Part shown: in pieces, positions 15,340 to 44,500 of the stretch
Numbering within the stretch: the first letter of the stretch is position 1
How the letters are laid out: every line of letters begins with the position of its first letter
Assembly: GCA_025558095.1 (NCBI GenBank)
Contig: JAIVFI010000012.1
Location: 620,001 to 684,000 of the forward strand
DNA from: Hyaloraphidium curvatum SAG 235-1
Taxonomy: Eukaryota > Fungi > Monoblepharomycota
Length of the DNA stretch: 64,000 nucleotides
Direction of reading: 5' to 3'
Program-made: the position numbers and the translations under genes
Notes under the pieces: generated by a model
What the model was told of the DNA's origin: nothing
The model's database searches: none
Seen by the model: the letters and a program-made list of their open reading frames with translations, nothing else

Positions 15340-15701
15340 CGGCAGACCCCACACCGGCTCGCCGGCCGTGGCGAGGGCAAACGCCAGCCAGAGGGCGAAG
15401 TTGACCGAGTGCGAGAGCACGATGGCCGCGAAGCCGGCGGCGAGCGCGGTCGGCGTGTACAGCGGCGCCGGCGCGGCCGCGTTCCGGCCCCACGACGACG
15501 CGAGCAGCGCCCGTTTCCGCGAGCCGGTCTCGAGGTCCGTGTCCGTGCCGAGGAGCTCCCCGATGCGCGCGCGCCATGCTCGGTGCTGCGGTATAAGGTT
15601 GCACCGCTGCATTGCCACGCCTCGCATCGGGTAGTCATCGATCGCCCGAGGTCTCCGCGGCCGAGTCATGTCCGGCAGGCCCGCGAACGCCTCCGTCCGT
15701 C

Positions 15702-16688
15702 CCCGACGCCAGGACTGCCCAGCCTAGCGGCACCCGGAGGTACGGTCAGGCCGGGGTCGCCGGCGTCGGGTACCCGTCCCGTCCGCGACGGCTACGTGTC
15801 CTAACGAGTGGCGCCCGGCCGCACGTCCGTCGGCCCCCGACGCTCGTCTGCGCACAGTGCGACGGCACCAAAGAGCGCCGTCGCCGCTGCGCGGTGGGCG
15901 TCGGGTACCCCCCCTCCCTCCTCTCCCCTCGTCCGCAGGTCCGTGGTGCGCCTGCGCCTCCCCGGATTCCGTCCCCGTCCTCGGTCCGCGGCCATTCTTG
16001 CCCCCGATGCCCATTTGCATATTCGGCAACGCCGGCGGTTCGCACCGCCGGCGCTGGCGGAGAAGGGCATCGGGTGCCCCGTGCTGCTGCCGTCCGACCC
16101 GGTTGAGCTCGTCCGTGCTTGTCCAGGTCTCCGTGCGACAGGATCGATGGTCGTCCCCAGGCCGCTCCCGATGCACCGAAACTCGCCGGCTACGACGGCA
16201 CCCCTGGCGCCGTCGCACGGAGCTCCGGTGCGTCGGGTACCCCTGCTCGCTCTCCGACGCCTCAGTGTCCGATGGCTCACGAGCCGCCGGCCTGTGGGTC
16301 CGCGAGTCCCCGACGCGAGCACTTTTCCGATTAACGGCACCCGGAAGCGCCGTCAGGTCGAAGATCGCCGGCGTCGGGCACCCGTCTCGCCTCCCTCCGA
16401 CGCCTCCGACCGGACCGAACGGGTGCCCGTGCCACGAGGTCGTAGGTCCCCGACGCCTACGTACCAGGCATGACTTTGACGGCACCGAAAAGTGCCGTCG
16501 CGTCTGAGGAAAGGGCGTCGGGTACCTCCCCTCTCCTGCCCCTCCCTCCCTGCCCTTGTCTGCGACAACCCGAGGGGTGCGCCTCCAGGTCCCGTCCCCG
16601 TCCCCGTCCTACGCTCCCGACGCCAGGGCTTCCACGGCACGCGCCGGCGGCGGGTTGCTGCCGGCGGCCTGGGGCTCCGGGCGTCGGG
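15702..16688. repeat. Hairpin array A: 7 units of CCCGAYGC..[inner stem]..GCRTCGGG(TACCC), period about 134-167 bp
   Basis: Left arms start at about 15702, 15836, 16003, 16167, 16309, 16449, 16616; complementary right arms end about 70 nt later; inner stems such as CGACGGCACC/GGCGCCGTCG. Confidence 0.85.
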
Positions 16689-16940
16689 TGCGCGCCTCTC
16701 CGGGACGCGGCGCGATTCCCCGAATGCAAACGGCGGCACCTCCCGGCGCCGCCGCCGCCGGCCTGCGCGCCGCGTCCTCGGTCTCCTCGAGCGCGTCCGC
16801 TGTTGCCCAGGTCCGGCCAGCGGCGGGGCGGGGACGGGACGTGCGGATGGGTGGATGACCTGTCGGTTCGCCGGGCTTCTCCCCACCGCCGCACAACCAA
16901 TCATCCCCTCCCCATCCATTCCCGTCCCCCACCCCCACGG

Positions 16941-18311
16941 CTAAACCACCAGCCTCAACCCCCCATCCACCACGATCCGCGTCCCCGTCGCCGCCCTGAG
17001 CGCCACGGCGGCCATCACCGCGTCCGCCACCTCGTCGGGCTGCAGCACGCGCCGCAGGGGGGTGCGCGAGGCCGCGAGGTGCAGGTCGGCGGGGCTGCGG
17101 TCGGGGACGAAGGGGGTGTCGACTTGCCGGGCGGGGCGGGGCGGGTCAGCCCCGGAACGGCGGGATGCAAGCGGGGAAGCGGACCCACCGGTCCCGGGTG
17201 CGACCGAGACCACGCGCACCTCGGGCGCCAGCAGCCTCCCCAGGCCCAGCACCATGCTGTCCAACGCGCCCTTGCTCGCCGCGTACGCGACGCCGGGGCC
17301 CTTGCCCGTCTCGCCGGCGATGCTGGTCACGGGCACCACGACGGCGTCGCCGCCGGCCTGGCGGAGGAGGGGGAGCAGCGCGCGGATGCACGAGTAGGGG
17401 CCGACGACGTTGGTGTGCAGGAGGGAGAGGACGGAGGAGGGGGATTCGGGGAGGTTTTGGGAGGGGAGGGCCGGGTGGGTGGCGGCGGCGGTGAGCACGA
17501 GGACGTGCAGGCCGCGGCCGGCGCAGGCGGCGGAGATGGCCAGGGCGGCGGCGAGGATGCTGGCGTCGTCGGCCAGCTCGAGGGGGAATATCTCGTGCGG
17601 GGGCTGGCCTGCGGGCGGCGGGGGCATGGAGGCGAGCAGGGCGCGGGCGCGGTCCAGGCCGGTGCGGTACGAGAGGAGCACGGTCGCTCCGGCGGCGGCG
17701 AGGCGCAGGCACGAGGCGCGGCCGATGCCGGAGGAGCCGCCAATGACGGCGGCGAATTTGCCTGCGAGGGGCCTGAGGGTGGGCGCGGGGAAGGGCAGGA
17801 GAAACAGCGGGGGTTGGGCGGGTGCGGCGGGGGGTTGGGCGGGGGGCGGTTGCGCCTGCTCCTCTGCCCGCTCCTGTACCCGCTCCTGTTCCAGCTCCTG
17901 TTCCGGCTCGGGTTCCAGCTCCTGCACGTGCCCGTGGTTGACCTGCACGGGTTCGATGGCCGCCAGCGGGGCCCCGTGTTGCAGCTCGCCGTACGCGGCC
18001 ACCTCGTCCTCGCCGCCCGCGGGCAGCGCCTTCCTCCCCCGCGCGCGCCTCCCACCCCTCCCGCGCGGCACCGCCGCCGCTGCCGTCACGACCATCTCCG
18101 CCGACGCGCTGCCGCCCTCCATCGGCCCGTCGTCCTCCATCGGAAACGCGAACGGGTCGTCCGCGGCCGCCGCGCCGCCGCGGCCCCGCCCGCGCCCGCG
18201 CCCACCGCGGCCACCGCGCCCGGGGGACGGGGCGGCAGAGGAAGAAACGCCGCCGCGGCCGCCGCGCCCGCGGCCGCCCCGGCCCCGGCGGGAGGCGCGT
18301 TTGGGGGGCAT
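16941..18311 (-). CDS. Short-chain dehydrogenase/reductase with a long N-terminal RGG-rich, acidic and Pro-rich extension; 2 exons
   Basis: AAVIGGSSGIG, TNVVG, TSIAG, YAASK (YxxxK), VAPGT|VDTPF across intron 17123-17188, ATGTRIVVDGG; N-terminal MPPKRASRRGRGGRGRGGRGG in the same frame. Confidence 0.85.
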   Translation of the reverse strand: MPPKRASRRGRGGRGRGGRGGVSSSAAPSPGRGGRGGRGRGRGRGGAAAADDPFAFPMEDDGPMEGGSASAEMVVTAAAAVPRGRGGRRARGRKALPAGGEDEVAAYGELQHGAPLAAIEPVQVNHGHVQELEPEPEQELEQERVQERAEEQAQPPPAQPPAAPAQPPLFLLPFPAPTLRPLAGKFAAVIGGSSGIGRASCLRLAAAGATVLLSYRTGLDRARALLASMPPPPAGQPPHEIFPLELADDASILAAALAISAACAGRGLHVLVLTAAATHPALPSQNLPESPSSVLSLLHTNVVGPYSCIRALLPLLRQAGGDAVVVPVTSIAGETGKGPGVAYAASKGALDSMVLGLGRLLAPEVRVVSVAPGTGGSASPLASRRSGADPPRPARQVDTPFVPDRSPADLHLAASRTPLRRVLQPDEVADAVMAAVALRAATGTRIVVDGGLRLVV

Positions 18312-18454
18312 GGAAACGCGTTGTGTGGGGAAAGTCCCTTGGCGCATGCACCGCCGAGAAAGCCGAGGACAGGTCATCGGAGGACACCCGCGGAGGAGGG
18401 CGGATGGGGGGCAGGAAACCGCACGATGGCGATGAAAATGGATGCGTTGGTGCA

Positions 18455-21290
18455 TGGACGCGGGCTGGACGGCGGGCGGGCGGCGCCCTCGGGTGCCGCC
18501 CATGAAAGCACCTGGCCCGCGTCATGGCCGCACCCAGGAACAAGCGTACCCGGCTCGCCTGCCTCCCACGCCGACGCCCCGCGGTGTCGGTTGTGCTGAA
18601 GTCGCGGTGACGCCGCGGACGGCATCGGGCGGTTCCGCGTCGGGGACGAGCAAGGTCGGCAGGGGGAGCACGCCCCGACGCGGGGGCCGCTACCAGGCGA
18701 TACCTGCCCGGGCAGGCATCAGGCGCTTCGCATTCTTGTGGCGTATCCTGCGTCGGGGATGCTTCCGGACAAGGCATCGGACGCGGGGCTTTCGCGGACG
18801 GGGGCAGCGCCCGGATATGAGGCGTCGCCGCGGATCTCGGTTCATAGAACCCCGCGTCCGGCAAACCACATGCATGGGTACCCGGCCTCTGGCCTCATCC
18901 CGCCGACGACACCGACTGTTGGTGCAACGGGAGCGCGTGGTTCAGGAACGTCGGCGGGTAAAGGACGCCCCGACGCGGGAGGGGCCGGGAGGCGATGCCC
19001 GCCAGTGCGGGCATTTCTTCACGGCGTCTCTTCTTGCGTCGGGTTCCTGGCAGACGTGCATCGGACGCGGGGCTCATCGGACAGACGGGGGCAGCGCCTC
19101 GGGAGGCGTTGCCACAGAGTGCGAATGGAATGAGCCTCGCGTCCCGGCATCACCACATGCAGCGTACCCGGCCCCTCGCCTCCTTCTGTCGACGGCAGAA
19201 GCAGTCGGGGAACGGGATGGGAGGAAGCCGGGGACGGCATCGGACGTTTCCTCGTTTGGGACGATCGAGGTCGGGAAGGTGAAGGCCGCCCCGACGCGGA
19301 AGGCGCCACCAAGCGATGTCTGCCCCGGCAGGCATTGTTCGTGGTCGGTCCAGCGTCGGAATGGCTCGTGGACAAGGCGTCGGACGCGTGGCTCTGGAGA
19401 ACGGGGGCGGCGCCTCGGGAGGCGCCTCCTTTTCGGGTTGTGTTTTGGATCCCCGCGTCCGGCTGCAAAGCACCCAGCGTACCCGGCGGCTCACCTGGCT
19501 CCGGCGATGACACCATCTGTTTGCATCACGGCGTCGTTTTCAGCCGCCGGGGACGGCATCCAACGGCATCGGGGTTGCAGCGAGCAAGGTCGGGAAGCGA
19601 CGCCCCACCGACGCGGGCGGCTCCACCGGGCGATGTCTGCCCCGGTAGGCATTTCCGCGGAACAGGCGGTCCGCTTCGGGAATAACCTGTGGATGTGGCG
19701 TGGGACGCGGGGTTCCGCCGGGAGTGCAGCGCCTCTGGAGGCGTCGTCCTGCGCATCCAAACGGCCGAAGAACCCGCGTCCGGCTTCGCCAAGATCGCCG
19801 GGGAGTACCCGGCCCCGCCGCTCCCGGGGACGGCATCAGACGGTCGACGGACGGAGTCGATTTAGGTCGGGAATGGCGCCCCACCGACGCGGGAGGCGCT
19901 GCCGGATGGATGCTCGCCCAGGCGAGCAATTTCTTCCCGGGCTGGCTGCTTCTTGCGTCGATTAGAGCGCTGCGGACGTGCGACGGATGCGGGGCTTCGT
20001 GGGACAAGGCCACGCCTTGGGAGGCGTCGCCAACATTCGACAAGGATCGCCCGGCATCACCACGGCACAGCGTCCCCGGCCTTTGGCATCCCTGCACCGA
20101 TGGCTCGGGCTGTCGGTGCAGGGGGCCCAACGACCGGTGACGGAATCGGATAACGCGACGTTTCGGGGCCGGAACGAACGGTTCGGGATCGGAGGCCCGA
20201 TGCGGAGGCATTCCCTGTGTGATGCCCGTTGGCGAGGTGACGCAGGGGACGGCACCGAGCGTATCCGCGGCGGGACGATCGAGGTCGGCAGGGTAGGAAT
20301 ACCGACGCGGGCGGCGCTACCAGGTGATGCCCGCCGGTACTGGTATTGCTTGAACGCTGTTGTTCGCGTCGGGGTGGGTTCGAAGGCGTGGCATCGGACG
20401 CGGGGCTCGGGGACGAGGACAGCGCCTCGGGAGGCGTCGCCGTCGCACCTGCGGGAAATCCCCGCGTCCGGCATCACCACATGCAGGGTACCCGGCCTCT
20501 TTTGTTCCTACGCTGACGGCCGGGCTGCCGTCAGCGGGATGAGGATAACGAGCGATAGGCCGGGGACGGGCATCGGCTGTTCCGGGACGTCGGCATGCAA
20601 GCTCGGGACCGGACGCCCCGACGCGGGAGGTGCTCCCGGACTATGCTTGTCTTTGCGGGCATTGGCTTCTGGCGCTTCACGCGCGTTGTCGAAGATCCGT
20701 CCGCGGACATGGCATCGGACGCGAGGCCTGCCCTGCACGGGGGCGCCCGGGAGTCCGAGGCGCCGTGGAGTGCTCATGCCTAGGCCCCGCGTCCGGCCGG
20801 GAGCGTACTCGCTCCAAAGCTTACCTTCGCCGACAGCCGGCGCTGTTGGTGAAGATGAAGCTGACGTGCGGTGTCGCTGTTGGGCGTTTTCGTGGCGGAG
20901 AAGGGCGAGGATGGAATCGGACGCCGCCCCGCCGGCGCGATGTGGCATCGATGCTCCTTTCAAGTTACGGCCCGTTCATCCTCTCGCGCTGATGGAGTGT
21001 TTCATCGGACGTGCGACAGACGCGGGGTTTCGTGGAGGAGGGCAGCTGCGCCTGAAGAGGCGCCGCTGTCCTCGCCGTAGAGTCCCGCGTCAATGAGCGT
21101 CACCACCGCGCAGCTGTCGGCAGCGTGACGAGCCACTTGCGTCACTCCACCAACGGCTGATGTCGTCGGTGCTGTGTAGGCGGATGGGCCGGGGACGACA
21201 TCGGGCTGTTTCCAGACCGGGTAAGCGAGGTCTGGAACGGATGCCCCGACGCAAGGTGCGATCCCGGGCCTGCCTGGCGGACATCGTCTT
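18455..21290. repeat. Hairpin array B: about 9-10 degenerate units of roughly 300 bp, each with three two-tier hairpins
   Basis: Recurrent CCGACGC..GATGYYYGC/GCRRGCAT..GCGTCGG; CGGACGCGGGG..GCGCCTC/GAGGCG..CCCCGCGTCCG; GTACCCGGC..GCCGGGGAC; unit starts about 18673, 18968, 19291, 19608, 19884, 20302, 20616, 20920, 21244, plus a partial unit at 18455. Confidence 0.88.
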
Positions 21291-21728
21291 CTCGAAGGCC
21301 CTTGCGCTCGGGACCATTCACACCAGGACGGGGGCCGGCGCGCCGGACGCGGGATCCGACACGGTGCGGCGGCGCGCGCCACAGCGGCGCCTCCCCCGGA
21401 CGATCTCGCGTCCCGCACCGCCGAATCTCGCGCTCGGCTTCGGACGACCTATCGCCGACAGCATCCAACCATCGGGGAAGCGGGGCGACGTGAAGCCCGG
21501 GACAGAACTCCGACGGCCACGGACCGGGGAACCTTCGGCAACATCGGAATCGGGATCGGGGAGCCCGGACATGACGCGGGCTCGCTACGCGATTGGTGCC
21601 GGCCGGGGCAGGCACTAGGTTGCGTTTCCGGTTCTCGCGTCGGGATAGCCCGCGGACGTGAACCCTGGGATCTGCGGCCAAGCCGACCGTCCGCTCCCCG
21701 CTCCGTTTTCCTCATCTCAATACGCAGC

Positions 21729-22115
21729 TCAACAATCCGGCAAATTGTACCTCGTCATCCCCGCATCCAACTCGGGCTCCCCGCTTTCGACCTCCTCCGC
21801 CGTCGCCTGCACCCTGACCCTGAACAGCGTCGCGCACGGCCTCCTCTCGCCCGGCAGGTACGCCGCCGGCCTCGCCCCCGGCGCGTACGGATTGTCCCTC
21901 TCCGGGCGATAATCCCACACGGCGCCCAGCGCGGCCTCGGTGGCGGGGCGGAGGTCGGCGGGGGCGAGCGCGCGCACGCGGGGGCCGCCGTCCTCGCCGT
22001 TCCAGACGACGAGGACGTCCAGCTCCGGGGGCCGGGCGCGGAGGGCGGCGAGTTGGGAGCGGAGGAGGGCGATTTCGGCGCGGAGGGTGGAGAGCTCGTC
22101 CGGGGACGCGGCCAT
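21729..22115 (-). CDS. Small hypothetical protein (128 aa) with an N-terminal coiled coil
   Basis: ATG 22115; ELSTLRAEIALLRSQLAALR heptads; protein-like composition and GC3-rich codons. Confidence 0.55.
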   Translation of the reverse strand: MAASPDELSTLRAEIALLRSQLAALRARPPELDVLVVWNGEDGGPRVRALAPADLRPATEAALGAVWDYRPERDNPYAPGARPAAYLPGERRPCATLFRVRVQATAEEVESGEPELDAGMTRYNLPDC

Positions 22116-22208
22116 CGACGCGCGGTTGGGAGGACGACGCGACCGAGTGACCCGGGGGACGCGATCGGGGACGCGATCGGGAAGACCCCCTGCCACCCTC
22201 CACCCGCA

Positions 22209-23720
22209 ATGCCGCCCCTCGCGCTGACTCCCGAGGAGTTCCTCGTGCTCTTCCCGTCGTCCTCGCCGGCGGCCGCGTCGGCGTTCGCCGTGTCGCGGCC
22301 GGCGCCCGACCCCGCCGCCGCGCTCCGCGCCTCGGAGGTCCTGCCGCTGGACCGGCTGTCTTCGGTGCTCTCCGGCGCCGGCATGGCCCCTTTCGCGTGG
22401 CTGACGCGGCTGACGGCGCACCGTCTCCGCCTGTTCGCGCTGCCGAGCCTCATCGCGACGTTCTTCGCCGCCGCGCTGCTCTTCGCGCCCCCGTTCGCGG
22501 CGGTGGCGCTGTTTGCCCCGCCGTCGAGGTTCCCCGCGGGCAGGGTCGCCGCGGGCACCGTAGCCGCGTCGCTGTACCTGCTCGCGTGGCCGCTGGCTTT
22601 CCTCGCCATGCTGTTCGCCAGGCAGCCGTCGGCCAAGGGCGACCTCCCGCGCACGGAGCCCGCCGAGGAGCCCTATCGGGATCTGTACGCCGTCAGAATC
22701 GCCAATGGGCCCCCCCGATGGGTCATGCTAGCCGACGGGGGCCGGAAGGCAGGCACGGATGATCCCGAGGATCAGGATCACGGCGACCGGGACGGCCTCA
22801 CCCTGCTGTTCCACGATCCGGCCAGCGTCTCGTGCCCGTGCCCGCGCCCCACGTGCACAGGGGGCCGCTTGCCGCGCGGCATGGTGGCCGCCGGGATCGG
22901 GGACGCCCTCGTGACCCTGTGCACCGTCGTGCTCCCGCAGCTGGCCATGCTCTCCACCCCCATGGTGTCGTTCGCGGGGCCCTTTTGGACGACGCCCTGG
23001 AGCGCGGCGCTGGGCGCGCTGGCGCTCCTCGGGCTGGCGGCCGTCGCCGCGATCGGGGTGCCGAGCCGCTCGGGGACCACGGTGACGATGCCGATGATCC
23101 GCTTCCAGGGGATGCTGCAGCGCCGTGCGGTGGCCGCCGGACTGTGCGAGCTAATGCTGCGGATGGAAGCCGACGGATCCAAGCCTTCCCAGAGCGAGGG
23201 CGAAGAGCCGTACAAGTACCAGATCATCCACGACCACCTGTCCCGGAAGTGGTTCAACCTCTACAACCTCACCGACCGAACGCAGCTCGTCGTCGCATTC
23301 CTCCTCTCCGCCCTCCTCGTCTCGGTCGTCCTCTCGGTCGCCGTCGGCTCCTGCATCACCCTCTGGCAGCTCCTCGCCGCCCTCACGCAGGCCGCCTACC
23401 TCGTCCTCGAGCTCGTCTACGTCGCCGAATCCAACCTCCAGATCACCGCCGTCACGGACCTATACCGCGCCGCGCGGACCTCCCTGCGCCTTCTCGCCTC
23501 GGCAACCCCTTACCCGTCCCCCGCGCTGGCCGCGCACGAAGCCGTGCTGTCGTCGTTCCTCGAGGTCGACGGGTACCGCCTGCGCGCGTTCGGGACGGCG
23601 GTCAGCTACGGCTCGCTGAGGGGGCTCGTGGCCACCGCGGCCACGGTGATGCTGGGCCTGTGGAGCGTGGGGAGGGCTGCGGGGATCGGGTTCACGGTGG
23701 AGAGCGTGTGTCCGGCGTGA
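22209..23720 (+). CDS. Multi-pass membrane protein, paralog of 10986-12561 (GRL/DUF3537-like C-terminus); intronless
   Basis: LTPEEFLVLFP N-terminus (cf. LTAAELLALFP), CPCPRPTC, YQIIHDHLSRKW, VGSC, ESNLQI..LY, C-terminal RLRAFGTAVSYGSLRGLVATAATVMLGLWSVGR..VCP. Confidence 0.8.
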   Translation: MPPLALTPEEFLVLFPSSSPAAASAFAVSRPAPDPAAALRASEVLPLDRLSSVLSGAGMAPFAWLTRLTAHRLRLFALPSLIATFFAAALLFAPPFAAVALFAPPSRFPAGRVAAGTVAASLYLLAWPLAFLAMLFARQPSAKGDLPRTEPAEEPYRDLYAVRIANGPPRWVMLADGGRKAGTDDPEDQDHGDRDGLTLLFHDPASVSCPCPRPTCTGGRLPRGMVAAGIGDALVTLCTVVLPQLAMLSTPMVSFAGPFWTTPWSAALGALALLGLAAVAAIGVPSRSGTTVTMPMIRFQGMLQRRAVAAGLCELMLRMEADGSKPSQSEGEEPYKYQIIHDHLSRKWFNLYNLTDRTQLVVAFLLSALLVSVVLSVAVGSCITLWQLLAALTQAAYLVLELVYVAESNLQITAVTDLYRAARTSLRLLASATPYPSPALAAHEAVLSSFLEVDGYRLRAFGTAVSYGSLRGLVATAATVMLGLWSVGRAAGIGFTVESVCPA

Positions 23721-42829: not shown

Positions 42830-44500
42830 CACGATCGATCACCTGTCCGACCAGCCCGATCGCCGTCCGTCCGTGTCGCCTCGTTCCTGAGGGAATCCGG
42901 CACCCGAGGACTCCTTCGACGCCATGCAACCAACGGTGCCGACGGGGAGAACGCGAAGTGCAAGGCATCCGCACCGTGCGCGGGTGCCAGAACTCGTGGT
43001 CCCCGTCGGCTCGATCGTGCCTCCTAACGGCTCGCGCGCCATCGGACCTCATGCACCGCCTATTGTAAGGATCGACTGCCGGGGAACACGACACCAAGCA
43101 AAGGACCGTCGGTCTCCTTGCGGCGCTTTCCCAGGTGGCGCATGCCCCGGCTGCCTTTTCCGAGCACCGCTTCTCTTCCTGCACGCTTCTGGTTCCCAGA
43201 CACGGCGGTCCACCACTGCAGGCATGCCGACGGCGCCTCCACCGTTCAAGAAACACCGGCCTTCCGCCTGTGTTCGTCCCGGGTCGGAGCCGTCGGCGCG
43301 TGCTGCCTCCTGATTCCGTGCCCGTCCTGTCGTGCTCAACATCCGCAGGCGACCGACCGCCGGCCGAACGAGCGACCAAGAAGCATCGGCAGCGACCGAT
43401 GATCGGCGGCGGCCGTCCCGCCGGCTGCCGTCCCTCGATGCACACCGGGCAGTCCCCGAAGCCCCGCGTCCGAGTCAGTGTCCGCGAGTCCATGGCGGAG
43501 CAGACAGAGCACACCGACTATGCGCAAGGAGGCGCGTCAGCATCAGCGTGGCCGGTGCCGTGCAGCCGCCGTGCCAGTCGGCTTGCTTGAGCTGGCTGGA
43601 GTCGGCGAGGCGCCCGGCGTCGGGGCGCGGCCTGCTCGCGCGGTTCCGTGGTGCGGCCGCCGGCGCGAGACACACTTTGGAGAACGTGACATAAGCAAAA
43701 CGCTGATGTCGCATCCGGAACGAAGCACGCGCCGGCCGCCGTGTGCGATCGAACACCTGTCCGCGGTGAGGTGCCCCGATCGTCCGTCCGCGTGGCCTTG
43801 TTCTGCGTGGATCCCTGACATCCATACGATTGTTCGACACCGAGCGCTACCCTGCCGACGGGGCGGATGGCAGCGATGCATGAGGCACGAGCGACGCCCG
43901 GGCCCGACCCCGCCGTCCCCGTCGGCTTGGATCGCGCGCCGTGTGCCGTCGGAACCCGATGGCTGCCACCACCGAATGGACGGCGTATGTATCGACTGCC
44001 GGCGAATGTGAACCTGAGAAAGGATCGCCGCTGTGCGGTGCTTTCCCGGTGCCGCACATGCCGGCTGCCGATCTTGCGTCGAGGGGTCCATCAGGCGGCT
44101 AATCCTCGGATCGAGCCGCGGCGACAGGAAATGCGAAATGTCGACGGGCCACTACCTTGGCGTTGACGAGCACCGGCTTCGCGCCGGCGCTCCTACCGGC
44201 CGCGGTCCCGTCGGCGGTGCCGCATCCGAGGTGGCGTGTCCGTCCGCCGCGCACGGGGTCCGTCGTTGACTTGCCGCCGGCCAGGAGCTGCCGGTGAGGT
44301 GGCATCGGCATCGGGATCTGCCAATACTCATCCGCGCGGATTCCTGCCCGGCTGCCCGTCCCCCGATGCGCGTCCCCCGTCGAGAAGCCCCAGGTCCGGC
44401 TGGCTGCCCCGCCCGTCCGGCGAACCCGCGGGGGCACGCCGACGACAACAACGACGAGGCCGGTGAGGCATCAGAGTACCGGATTTGGTGTCGGCTGCGG
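42830..44500. repeat. Hairpin array C: about 11 alternating two-tier hairpins (GCCGACGG/CCGTCGGC and GCCGG/CCGGCTGCC), period about 145/290 bp, with a ~915-bp higher-order duplication
   Basis: Type 1 at about 42938-43010, 43226-43297, 43514-43581, 43854-43926, 44140-44215, 44438-44495; type 2 at about 43078-43151, 43359-43425, 43659-43736, 43998-44065, 44276-44352. Confidence 0.8.

Follow-up and report, generated by a model that had tools for sequence, protein, structure and literature searches.

The 64,000-nucleotide stretch of Hyaloraphidium curvatum DNA analysed here (hereafter the window) lies on a nuclear chromosome of this early-diverging, monoblepharid chytrid fungus, whose genome comprises 31.9 Mb in 55 contigs at ~67% G+C. 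Our subject is array B, a non-coding stretch of ~3.2 kb at 18447-21660 on the + strand, in which ten units and one partial unit follow one another in tandem and carry long hairpins. To its left lie a minus-strand gene for a short-chain dehydrogenase (SDR) and, beyond that gene, a second run of hairpins, array A.

Units and hairpins of array B

Array B is built from a module of ~300 bases (unit length 250-416 bp) whose copies have diverged widely. Pairwise identity among units averages 55% (range 39-68%), and adjoining units are no more alike than distant ones, with no gradient along the array. The repeat was missed by Tandem Repeats Finder and was recovered by a direct-repeat search and MAFFT alignment of the units (alignment A1). 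A preliminary description of this DNA, made from the letters of the sequence, had placed a ~300-bp unit of three nested hairpins at 18455-21290. The unit alignment and fold-back drawings bear out such a unit in ten copies plus the partial one, and the tandem array stands; its end at 21290 was set too early, as covariance models find an H2 hairpin at 21339-21419 and an H1 hairpin at 21564-21650 beyond it.

Each unit holds three hairpins of 70-85 nt in the order H3, H1, H2, with almost invariant basal stems and variable inner stems (Table 1). We describe this anatomy on the example unit at 19164-19478. H3 stands on the base GTACCCGGC/GCCGGGGAC (RNA form GUACCCGGC/GCCGGGGAC), which retains an A.G opposition and carries extensions that differ by unit; both traits had been reported before, and both were located again and their pairing drawn. 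The apical stems of H3 had been called unrelated in sequence, which alignments A1 and A7 contradict, since the inner hairpins have in common the core CCGACGGC...GCTGTCGG (RNA form CCGACGGC...GCUGUCGG). After H3 comes a short stretch that starts GGCAUCGG, and the sequence between H3 and H1 probably forms a fourth, small hairpin with a UUCC-type loop. In unit 6, an extra ~110 bp (20141-20250) repeats the 3' end of H3 and the GGCAUCGG region that follows it, a partial internal duplication.

H1, preceded by a linker (Table 1), forms a stem of ~30-33 bp with few bulges that rises from the base CCCCGACGC/GCGUCGGGG to an apex, GAUGCC.../...GGCAUU, with a conserved closing G.U pair; the apical variants previously listed at 18699-18720, 18994-19015, 19315-19336 and 19911-19928 are present, and they pair when drawn. 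The hinge GGAC(A/G)(A/U)GGC(A/G)U joins H1 to H2, whose base is CGGACGCGGGG/CCCCGCGTCCG (RNA form CGGACGCGGGG/CCCCGCGUCCG) and whose apex is GCGCC-loop-GGCGC. The unit-specific extensions of the H2 base noted earlier were found again (CTCAT/ATGAG in unit 2, CCT/AGG in unit 7), as was the recurring linker after H2, which appears twice in the same form and twice as a variant (Table 1). Each unit closes on the tail GGCAUCACCACAUGC or a variant of it.

Pairing, transcription and coding potential

All 25 modules of array B still fold despite the divergence of the units. In a fold-back alignment that is strand-symmetric, with G.T and A.C oppositions scored alike, the modules reach a total score of 1267 against 866-933 in 12 shuffles, ~18 standard deviations above them. 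In H2 and H3, 86-88% of stem cells are paired, compared with 31-53% in controls in which the pairing partner was slid (tests of H2, H3 and array A). The sequences compared in these analyses are all paralogous units of one genome, and their relatedness inflates the shuffle tests but not the slid controls.

Covariation differs among the hairpins. For H2 (nine copies, 21 pairs) the covariation score is 0.288 against 0.140 in shuffled data (0/500 shuffles), and eight pairs have changed on both sides against 4.4 in shuffles (7/500) and 1-5 in slid versions. H3 (six copies, 22 pairs) scores 0.285 against 0.148 (0/500), with six pairs changed on both sides against 2.7 (13/500); slid versions give 1-6, one of them equalling the observed 6. 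For H1 (nine copies, 21 pairs) the score is 0.194 against 0.167 (36/500), four pairs have changed on both sides against 3.2 in shuffles and 0-5 in slid versions, and apical exchanges are few (C-G/U-A at one pair, in 3+3 units). The clear compensatory changes first claimed for the whole unit thus hold for H2 and H3, but for H1 shrink to a few apical exchanges.

Two public sequencing runs carry the sequence, and our evidence from one of them, run X1, consists of contigs. We take X1 to be RNA-derived because 17123-17188 is missing from one of its contigs, a segment bounded by CT..AC on the + strand that corresponds to the GT..AG intron of the minus-strand SDR gene. Unspliced X1 contigs extend over most of array B (Table 1), contrary to the lack of RNA coverage that the preliminary description had named as evidence against a structured RNA, and their depth is similar to that of the neighbouring gene, whose spliced contig has a depth of 14.8. 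Coverage is uneven and depth falls to zero at 18279-18475 and 22022-22800, and the signal therefore resembles RNA rather than an even carry-over of DNA. The stretches of array B without an X1 contig, 18447-18550, 20607-20790 (H1 and H2 of unit 7) and 21327-21413 (H2 of unit 9), each hold one of the three H2 hairpins with the highest G+C content (0.78-0.81). Contigs break at the borders of hairpin modules, and Illumina adapters are present at two of the ends (20606 and 20791); the gaps may reflect technical drop-out at very stable hairpins or cutting of the RNA where hairpins begin and end. In both of the tagged ends, read 1 maps to the minus strand, and this would indicate + strand RNA if the library, whose type is off record, was stranded by the deoxyuridine triphosphate (dUTP) method.

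Several properties of the hairpins themselves indirectly favour the + strand as the RNA strand, as had been proposed from their G-U pairs. In the fold-back alignments, G.T and A.C oppositions stand at 92:28 on the + strand against ~84:49 in shuffles, an excess of ~3 standard deviations. In RNAfold predictions, the + strand has the more stable fold in 23 of the 25 modules (-1065 vs -930 kcal/mol in total), an advantage that is retained after subtracting the shuffled mean of each strand (Wilcoxon p=0.004), and the minimum-energy structures contain 94 G.U pairs on the + strand and 34 on the minus strand. The conserved G.U pair in the H1 apex counts in the same direction. Conservation is higher in the 5' arm than in the 3' arm for all three hairpins (0.73/0.63, 0.69/0.60 for H1, and 0.62/0.57), and the 5' arm of H1 measures 35-37 nt in eight of nine units, compared with 36-50 nt for its 3' arm; such an asymmetry should not be seen in a double-stranded DNA palindrome. 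GC skew is +0.08 to +0.11 over array B, against -0.15 in the 1-kb interval 16001-17000, which takes in most of array A.

Array B shows no coding signal. One + frame over 18436-21096 runs without a stop for 509 codons and, after a single stop at 19963, for a further 376 up to another at 21094; its 887 codons contain two internal stops, whereas the other two + frames contain 16 and 18. G+C content by codon position is flat in array B (0.68/0.69/0.70), whereas third-position G+C (GC3) exceeds 0.9 in the flanking genes, and from one unit to another the conserved motifs shift among all three frames. The open frame has no Pfam match, an exhaustive HMMER search of 1.84 billion representatives returned only the frame itself, and no contigs encoding it were found elsewhere. 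Random sequences of the same stop-poor composition, generated by first- and second-order Markov simulation, contain a frame open for 509 codons or more in 1.4-4.5% of cases (p ~0.01-0.05); the long frame is probably a product of chance, or at most a minor unexplained feature.

Array A, the enclosed gene and the genomic setting

Array A lies downstream of the SDR gene on the gene's own strand, and array B points away from the gene's 5' end. Read on the + strand, array A shares the base of H1 (CCCCGACGC/GCGTCGGG). Read on the minus strand, the hairpins open with GGGUACCCGACGCC and close with GGCGUCGGGGAC, which is the GUAC/GGAC base of the H3 type with its A.G opposition, and its inner hairpin GACGGC...GCCGUC resembles that of H3. 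A covariance model of seven array A hairpins on the minus strand (R3) has nine matches at E<1 in array B, all on the + strand and none on the minus strand, and adds the members 15553-15641 and 16700-16784 to array A. Covariation is evident in array A on the minus strand (score 0.313 against 0.187, 0/500; ten double-change pairs against 4.8), and many of its G.U pairs on that strand appear as A.C on the + strand. The hairpins of array A on the minus strand and H3 of array B are homologous, and two mirror-oriented arrays therefore flank the SDR gene. This mirror homology is a new finding.

The SDR protein is 94% identical to an annotated Hyaloraphidium curvatum protein, and its gene is matched by a spliced X1 contig. 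It has a Gly/Arg-rich N-terminal extension, and the gene contains a 66-nt intron (17123-17188) that is in frame and free of stops. Besides the annotated copy, its nearest relatives in the collection searched are bacterial SDRs at 40-45% identity, with no close eukaryotic relative in that collection; by these similarities the gene may be of bacterial origin. The ~135-bp gap between its start codon and the first hairpin of array B is without an RNA contig (Table 1), which makes it a candidate bidirectional promoter. An ACGCGT site resembling a MluI cell-cycle box lies in this gap at 18314-18322, and the feet of the array hairpins contain dozens of ACGCG/CGCGT cores. H2-like hairpins bracket the SDR gene in inverted orientation, at 16700-16784 (-) and 18447-18528 (+), ~160 bp from its stop and ~135 bp from its start. 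At the right end of array B, a small open frame without a Pfam family (21729-22115, minus strand, GC3 0.95) abuts the array.

Table 1. Positions of array B, its hairpins and neighbouring features in the window
Feature	Position	Strand	Evidence or remark
Partial unit, H2 only, start of array B	18447-18545	+	
Starts of the ten units	18546, 18878, 19164, 19479, 19805, 20072, 20488, 20805, 21100, 21420	+	Direct-repeat families, alignment A1, covariance-model matches
H3, example (unit 3)	19164-19235	+	Alignment A7, pair counts, fold-back drawings
H3, other copies	18546-18620, 19479-19554, 20488-20567, 21430-21503	+	Alignment A7, fold-back
H3, 3' arm lost	18878-~18960	+	Alignment A7, fold-back
H3, short	19805-19831	+	Alignment A7, fold-back
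H3, followed by partial duplication	20072-20140	+	Duplication of ~110 bp up to 20250
H3, base changed on both arms	20805-20916	+	Alignment A7, fold-back
Linker before H1, AGGTCGGGAAGG (RNA form AGGUCGGGAAGG)	19265-19278	+	Near-invariant columns of A1; in every unit; single-stranded
H1, example (unit 2)	18963-19049	+	Model R2, 55-82 bits across copies
H1, other copies	18668-18763, 19284-19366, 19601-19687, 19877-19968, 20295-20379, 20611-20697, 21239-21319, 21564-21650	+	Model R2
H2, example (unit 1)	18773-18865	+	Model R1, 48-80 bits across copies, E 1e-7 to 6e-14
H2, other copies	18450-18530, 19057-19150, 19376-19466, 19697-19787, 20390-20475, 20711-20800, 21012-21098, 21339-21419	+	Model R1
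H2, truncated	19979-20065	+	Model R1, 29.8 bits
Linker after H2, GCATCACCACATGC	19147-19160	+	Again at 20471; variants at 18861 and 20046
Array A, nine hairpins of ~75-85 nt	15553-16784	-	Alignment A8, model R3
SDR gene (short-chain dehydrogenase)	16941-18311	-	Pfam adh_short, E 7.7e-25
Gap from SDR start codon to first hairpin, ~135 bp	18312-18446	.	No RNA contig (X1 bin 18279-18475 at depth zero)
X1 contig	18551-20606		Unspliced, 2078 nt, depth 24.9, one mismatch
X1 contig	20791-21326		Unspliced, depth 20.5
X1 contig	21414-21969		Unspliced, depth 10.7

Searches of Rfam at the gathering score found no match in the whole window, and in E-value mode the best hit over 15500-21900 was MIR1846, at 26.9 bits against a cut-off of 77.5 bits. 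H/ACA box small nucleolar RNAs (snoRNAs) resemble the array hairpins in their two-tier design (lower stem, internal loop, upper stem) and, in some units, in an ACA placed 3 nt before the next element. However, the lower stem and 3' loop strand of the array B hairpins put any box far beyond the canonical 14-16 nt, the H box ANANNA is absent from seven of eight H1-H2 hinges, and ACA is present in only four of eight tails, and we rejected this class. C/D snoRNAs were rejected for want of an RTGATGA box in 18455-21660; self-cleaving ribozyme satellites and retrozymes, because no ribozyme family matched at E up to 10 and the CUGANGA core occurs once in 3.2 kb; and units transcribed by RNA polymerase III, because T-runs occur only five times and not once per unit.

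The array hairpin families are confined to one locus. Covariance models of H2 (R1), H1 (R2) and array A (R3) were run against the 32-Mb genome with the best 150 candidates per search scored, a depth at which very weak copies could escape, and among those candidates no copy lies outside C12:635.5-641.7 kb; a DNA search of the genome likewise found no further array copy. A dispersed mobile element (miniature inverted-repeat, foldback or Helitron-borne) was rejected on this absence of further genomic copies. Isolated hairpins on a CCCGACGC/GCGTCGGG base occur at C8:11390-11467, C8:25857-25936 and C12:698073-698132, and the exact pattern has ten matches outside the locus against three for a reversed-pattern control. 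Contig C8 was considered as a second array site and discarded, as it holds isolated hairpins only and no array. Within the window, a third intergenic run of long hairpins at 42900-44300 has a different base, GCCGACGG/CCGTCGGC, and a general design like that of arrays A and B. A pattern scan of metagenomes returned chance palindromes among the matches listed, none of them above 34 bits with R1; one contig labelled as human-gut metagenome was set aside. Literature searches yielded nothing on nuclear hairpin arrays of Hyaloraphidium curvatum.

A proposed structured long RNA and its alternatives

We favour the reading that array B encodes a functional, structured long non-coding RNA made of repeated three-hairpin modules on the + strand, to which we assign a probability of roughly 0.55. 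The preliminary description had reached a similar view (a non-coding, structure-conserved three-hairpin unit giving a + strand RNA), which the covariation of H2 and H3, the transcription and the several lines on the strand now support. Array B would be the template of a long, unspliced, non-coding + strand RNA, in which a ~300-nt module with three long hairpins and probably one small one was duplicated in tandem long ago and recurs about ten times. Selection would have kept the pairing, the near-invariant basal stems and, at the hairpin feet, short unpaired motifs (AGGUCGGGAA, GGCAUC), while the inner stems drifted and were repaired by compensatory changes; the invariant stem feet and their flanking motifs would be the functional sites. 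The most likely mode of action would be that of a multivalent platform, presenting three related stem-foot motifs, in ~30 copies altogether, to a single hairpin-recognising protein or a small number of them, which might bind only or might cut the hairpins out. Array B would be transcribed divergently from the SDR promoter region, with array A lying downstream on the SDR transcript strand. The strand of the RNA, selection acting on it as RNA, its binding or processing by proteins and a connection with the SDR gene are inferences, whereas the repeat, the hairpins, the covariation in H2, H3 and array A, the transcription, the lack of coding signal, the mirror homology and the confinement to one locus are observed.

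A set of observations weighs against this reading. No orthologous locus was found in other species by the SDR and open-frame searches or by the metagenome pattern scan, and the comparisons are limited to paralogues of a single genome. Across nine copies and 500 shuffles, the covariation of H1 is without significance, and hairpin-templated repair at the DNA level can give the same appearance as compensatory change. The X1 contigs carry no information on strand, ends or level, and the contig at 21414-21969 runs from the last unit of array B into the 3' part of the minus-strand frame at 21729-22115; part of its signal may be the 3' untranslated region of that minus-strand gene. Finally, a transcription-linked C-to-T bias on the sense strand could yield the G.T excess without selection, although the sense strand would still be the + strand.

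The closest known parallels to such an RNA are repeat-based long non-coding RNAs of mammals, NORAD with its about 12 diverged ~300-nt units as well as Xist and FIRRE. Array B resembles them as a long non-coding transcript of tandem units of a few hundred nucleotides that have diverged while keeping short motifs and hairpins, and the multivalent-binding logic of these RNAs is the one we propose for array B. It differs from them in having no sequence relation, a fungal host and no known binding protein, in units that consist almost wholly of three long hairpins with invariant feet, and in a mirror sister array across a gene. Mitochondrial double-hairpin elements, known from chytrids and others, are short, dispersed, mobile elements of mitochondrial DNA; they share with array B a G+C-rich, hairpin-forming, repeated and non-coding nature and the same fungal lineage. 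Array B, in contrast, is nuclear (on a contig of more than 684 kb, 67% G+C) with units of ~300 bp, and it is set apart from these elements by description rather than by sequence comparison.

The alternative that survives best, although we consider it unlikely, is that array B is a polycistronic precursor of small RNAs, with a + strand transcript cut at the hairpin feet by an enzyme of the RNase III/Dicer type and small RNAs arising above all from H1. It shares the RNA reading with the favoured interpretation and differs in the mode of action alone. Piwi-domain proteins are encoded in the genome, as are several RNase III domains, two of them in tandem, and small-RNA processing is therefore possible. 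The geometry of H1 is compatible with such processing, its better conserved 5' arm of more constant length recalls a guide strand opposite a passenger strand, and the contigs break at hairpin borders, with adapters on two of their ends and whole hairpins missing in the gaps. Large microRNA clusters, moreover, are usually built of tandem hairpin units, as in primate C19MC and zebrafish miR-430, which array B matches in its tandem units with 70-85-nt hairpins, long precursor, compensatory changes and one better conserved arm. Array B, however, has three hairpin types per unit and shows no clear conserved core of ~21 nt. Its conservation peaks instead in the 10-13-bp basal stems on both arms, and in H1 the two arms differ as 0.69 on the 5' side to 0.60 on the 3' side. 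All matches to microRNA families in Rfam lie far below threshold, the unprocessed 2-kb contig is as deep as the neighbouring mRNA, and the contig gaps coincide with the most G+C-rich hairpins and may be technical.

Somewhat less probable again is a role at the level of DNA, in which the hairpins act as single-stranded DNA or cruciforms and transcription is incidental, for example as lagging-strand hairpins flanking a replication origin or as the decayed inverted arms of a foldback-type element carrying the SDR gene. The mirror geometry of arrays A and B around a central gene makes such a role possible, and it fits the arrangement of lagging strands on either side of an origin, foldback arms made of tandem sub-repeats, and the genes of HUH-type elements, which are flanked by hairpins. 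The H2-like hairpin on each side of the gene fits as well, and G.T is the most tolerated mismatch in DNA hairpins too. Foldback (FB-type) transposons consist of a central segment, able to hold a gene, between inverted arms of tandem sub-repeats, which is the layout seen here; yet the hairpin families are restricted to one locus in 32 Mb, the enclosed gene encodes a dehydrogenase and not a transposase, and the arms differ greatly in length (1.2 vs 3.2 kb) and bear only a distant resemblance to each other. A passive relic at 55% unit identity should have lost its pairing, the asymmetry of conservation between 5' and 3' arms lacks a DNA-level explanation, and the region is clearly transcribed.

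We regard it as improbable that array B is a neutral local satellite, a palindrome-rich repeat without function whose apparent covariation stems from shared ancestry and G+C-rich composition. The derivation of all evidence from the paralogues of one genome, whose relatedness inflates the shuffle tests, and the behaviour of H1 would suit such an origin. Against it stand the folding of 25/25 modules, ~18 standard deviations over shuffles at 39-68% identity and with no gradient between neighbours, the slid-partner controls, in which relatedness is kept and pairing nevertheless drops from 86-88% to 31-53%, the nearly invariant basal stems, and an RNA as abundant as the neighbouring mRNA. The chance that the 509- and 376-codon frames encode a repetitive protein, a possibility raised at the outset, is close to negligible, for its scarcity of internal stops is outweighed by the absent codon periodicity, the motifs in all frames, the lack of any Pfam or protein relative other than the frame itself, and the Markov simulations, and on these grounds we rejected it.

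Returning to the structured-RNA reading, a bolder and distinctly tentative extension of it is that Hyaloraphidium curvatum possesses an undescribed class of locus-specific, structure-conserved hairpin arrays that are transcribed as long RNAs, with the hairpin feet serving as recognition sites for a dedicated hairpin-binding or hairpin-cutting machinery. Such arrays might represent a new route of small-RNA or ribonucleoprotein biogenesis, or a control domain that acts in cis, as RNA, on the enclosed gene, and at this locus they would form a mirror pair, one array on the gene's transcript strand and the other divergent from its promoter.

Almost no non-coding RNA biology has been described in early-diverging fungi. 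Here, ~30 hairpins (~40 with array A) have retained their shape even as the units diverged to 55% identity, and the locus is transcribed and matches nothing in Rfam. If the structured-RNA reading is true, array B would be a rare example in a chytrid of a structured long non-coding RNA with good computational support, and the mirror arrangement around a single gene suggests a general, as yet undescribed mechanism, at the RNA or the DNA level, rather than a curiosity.

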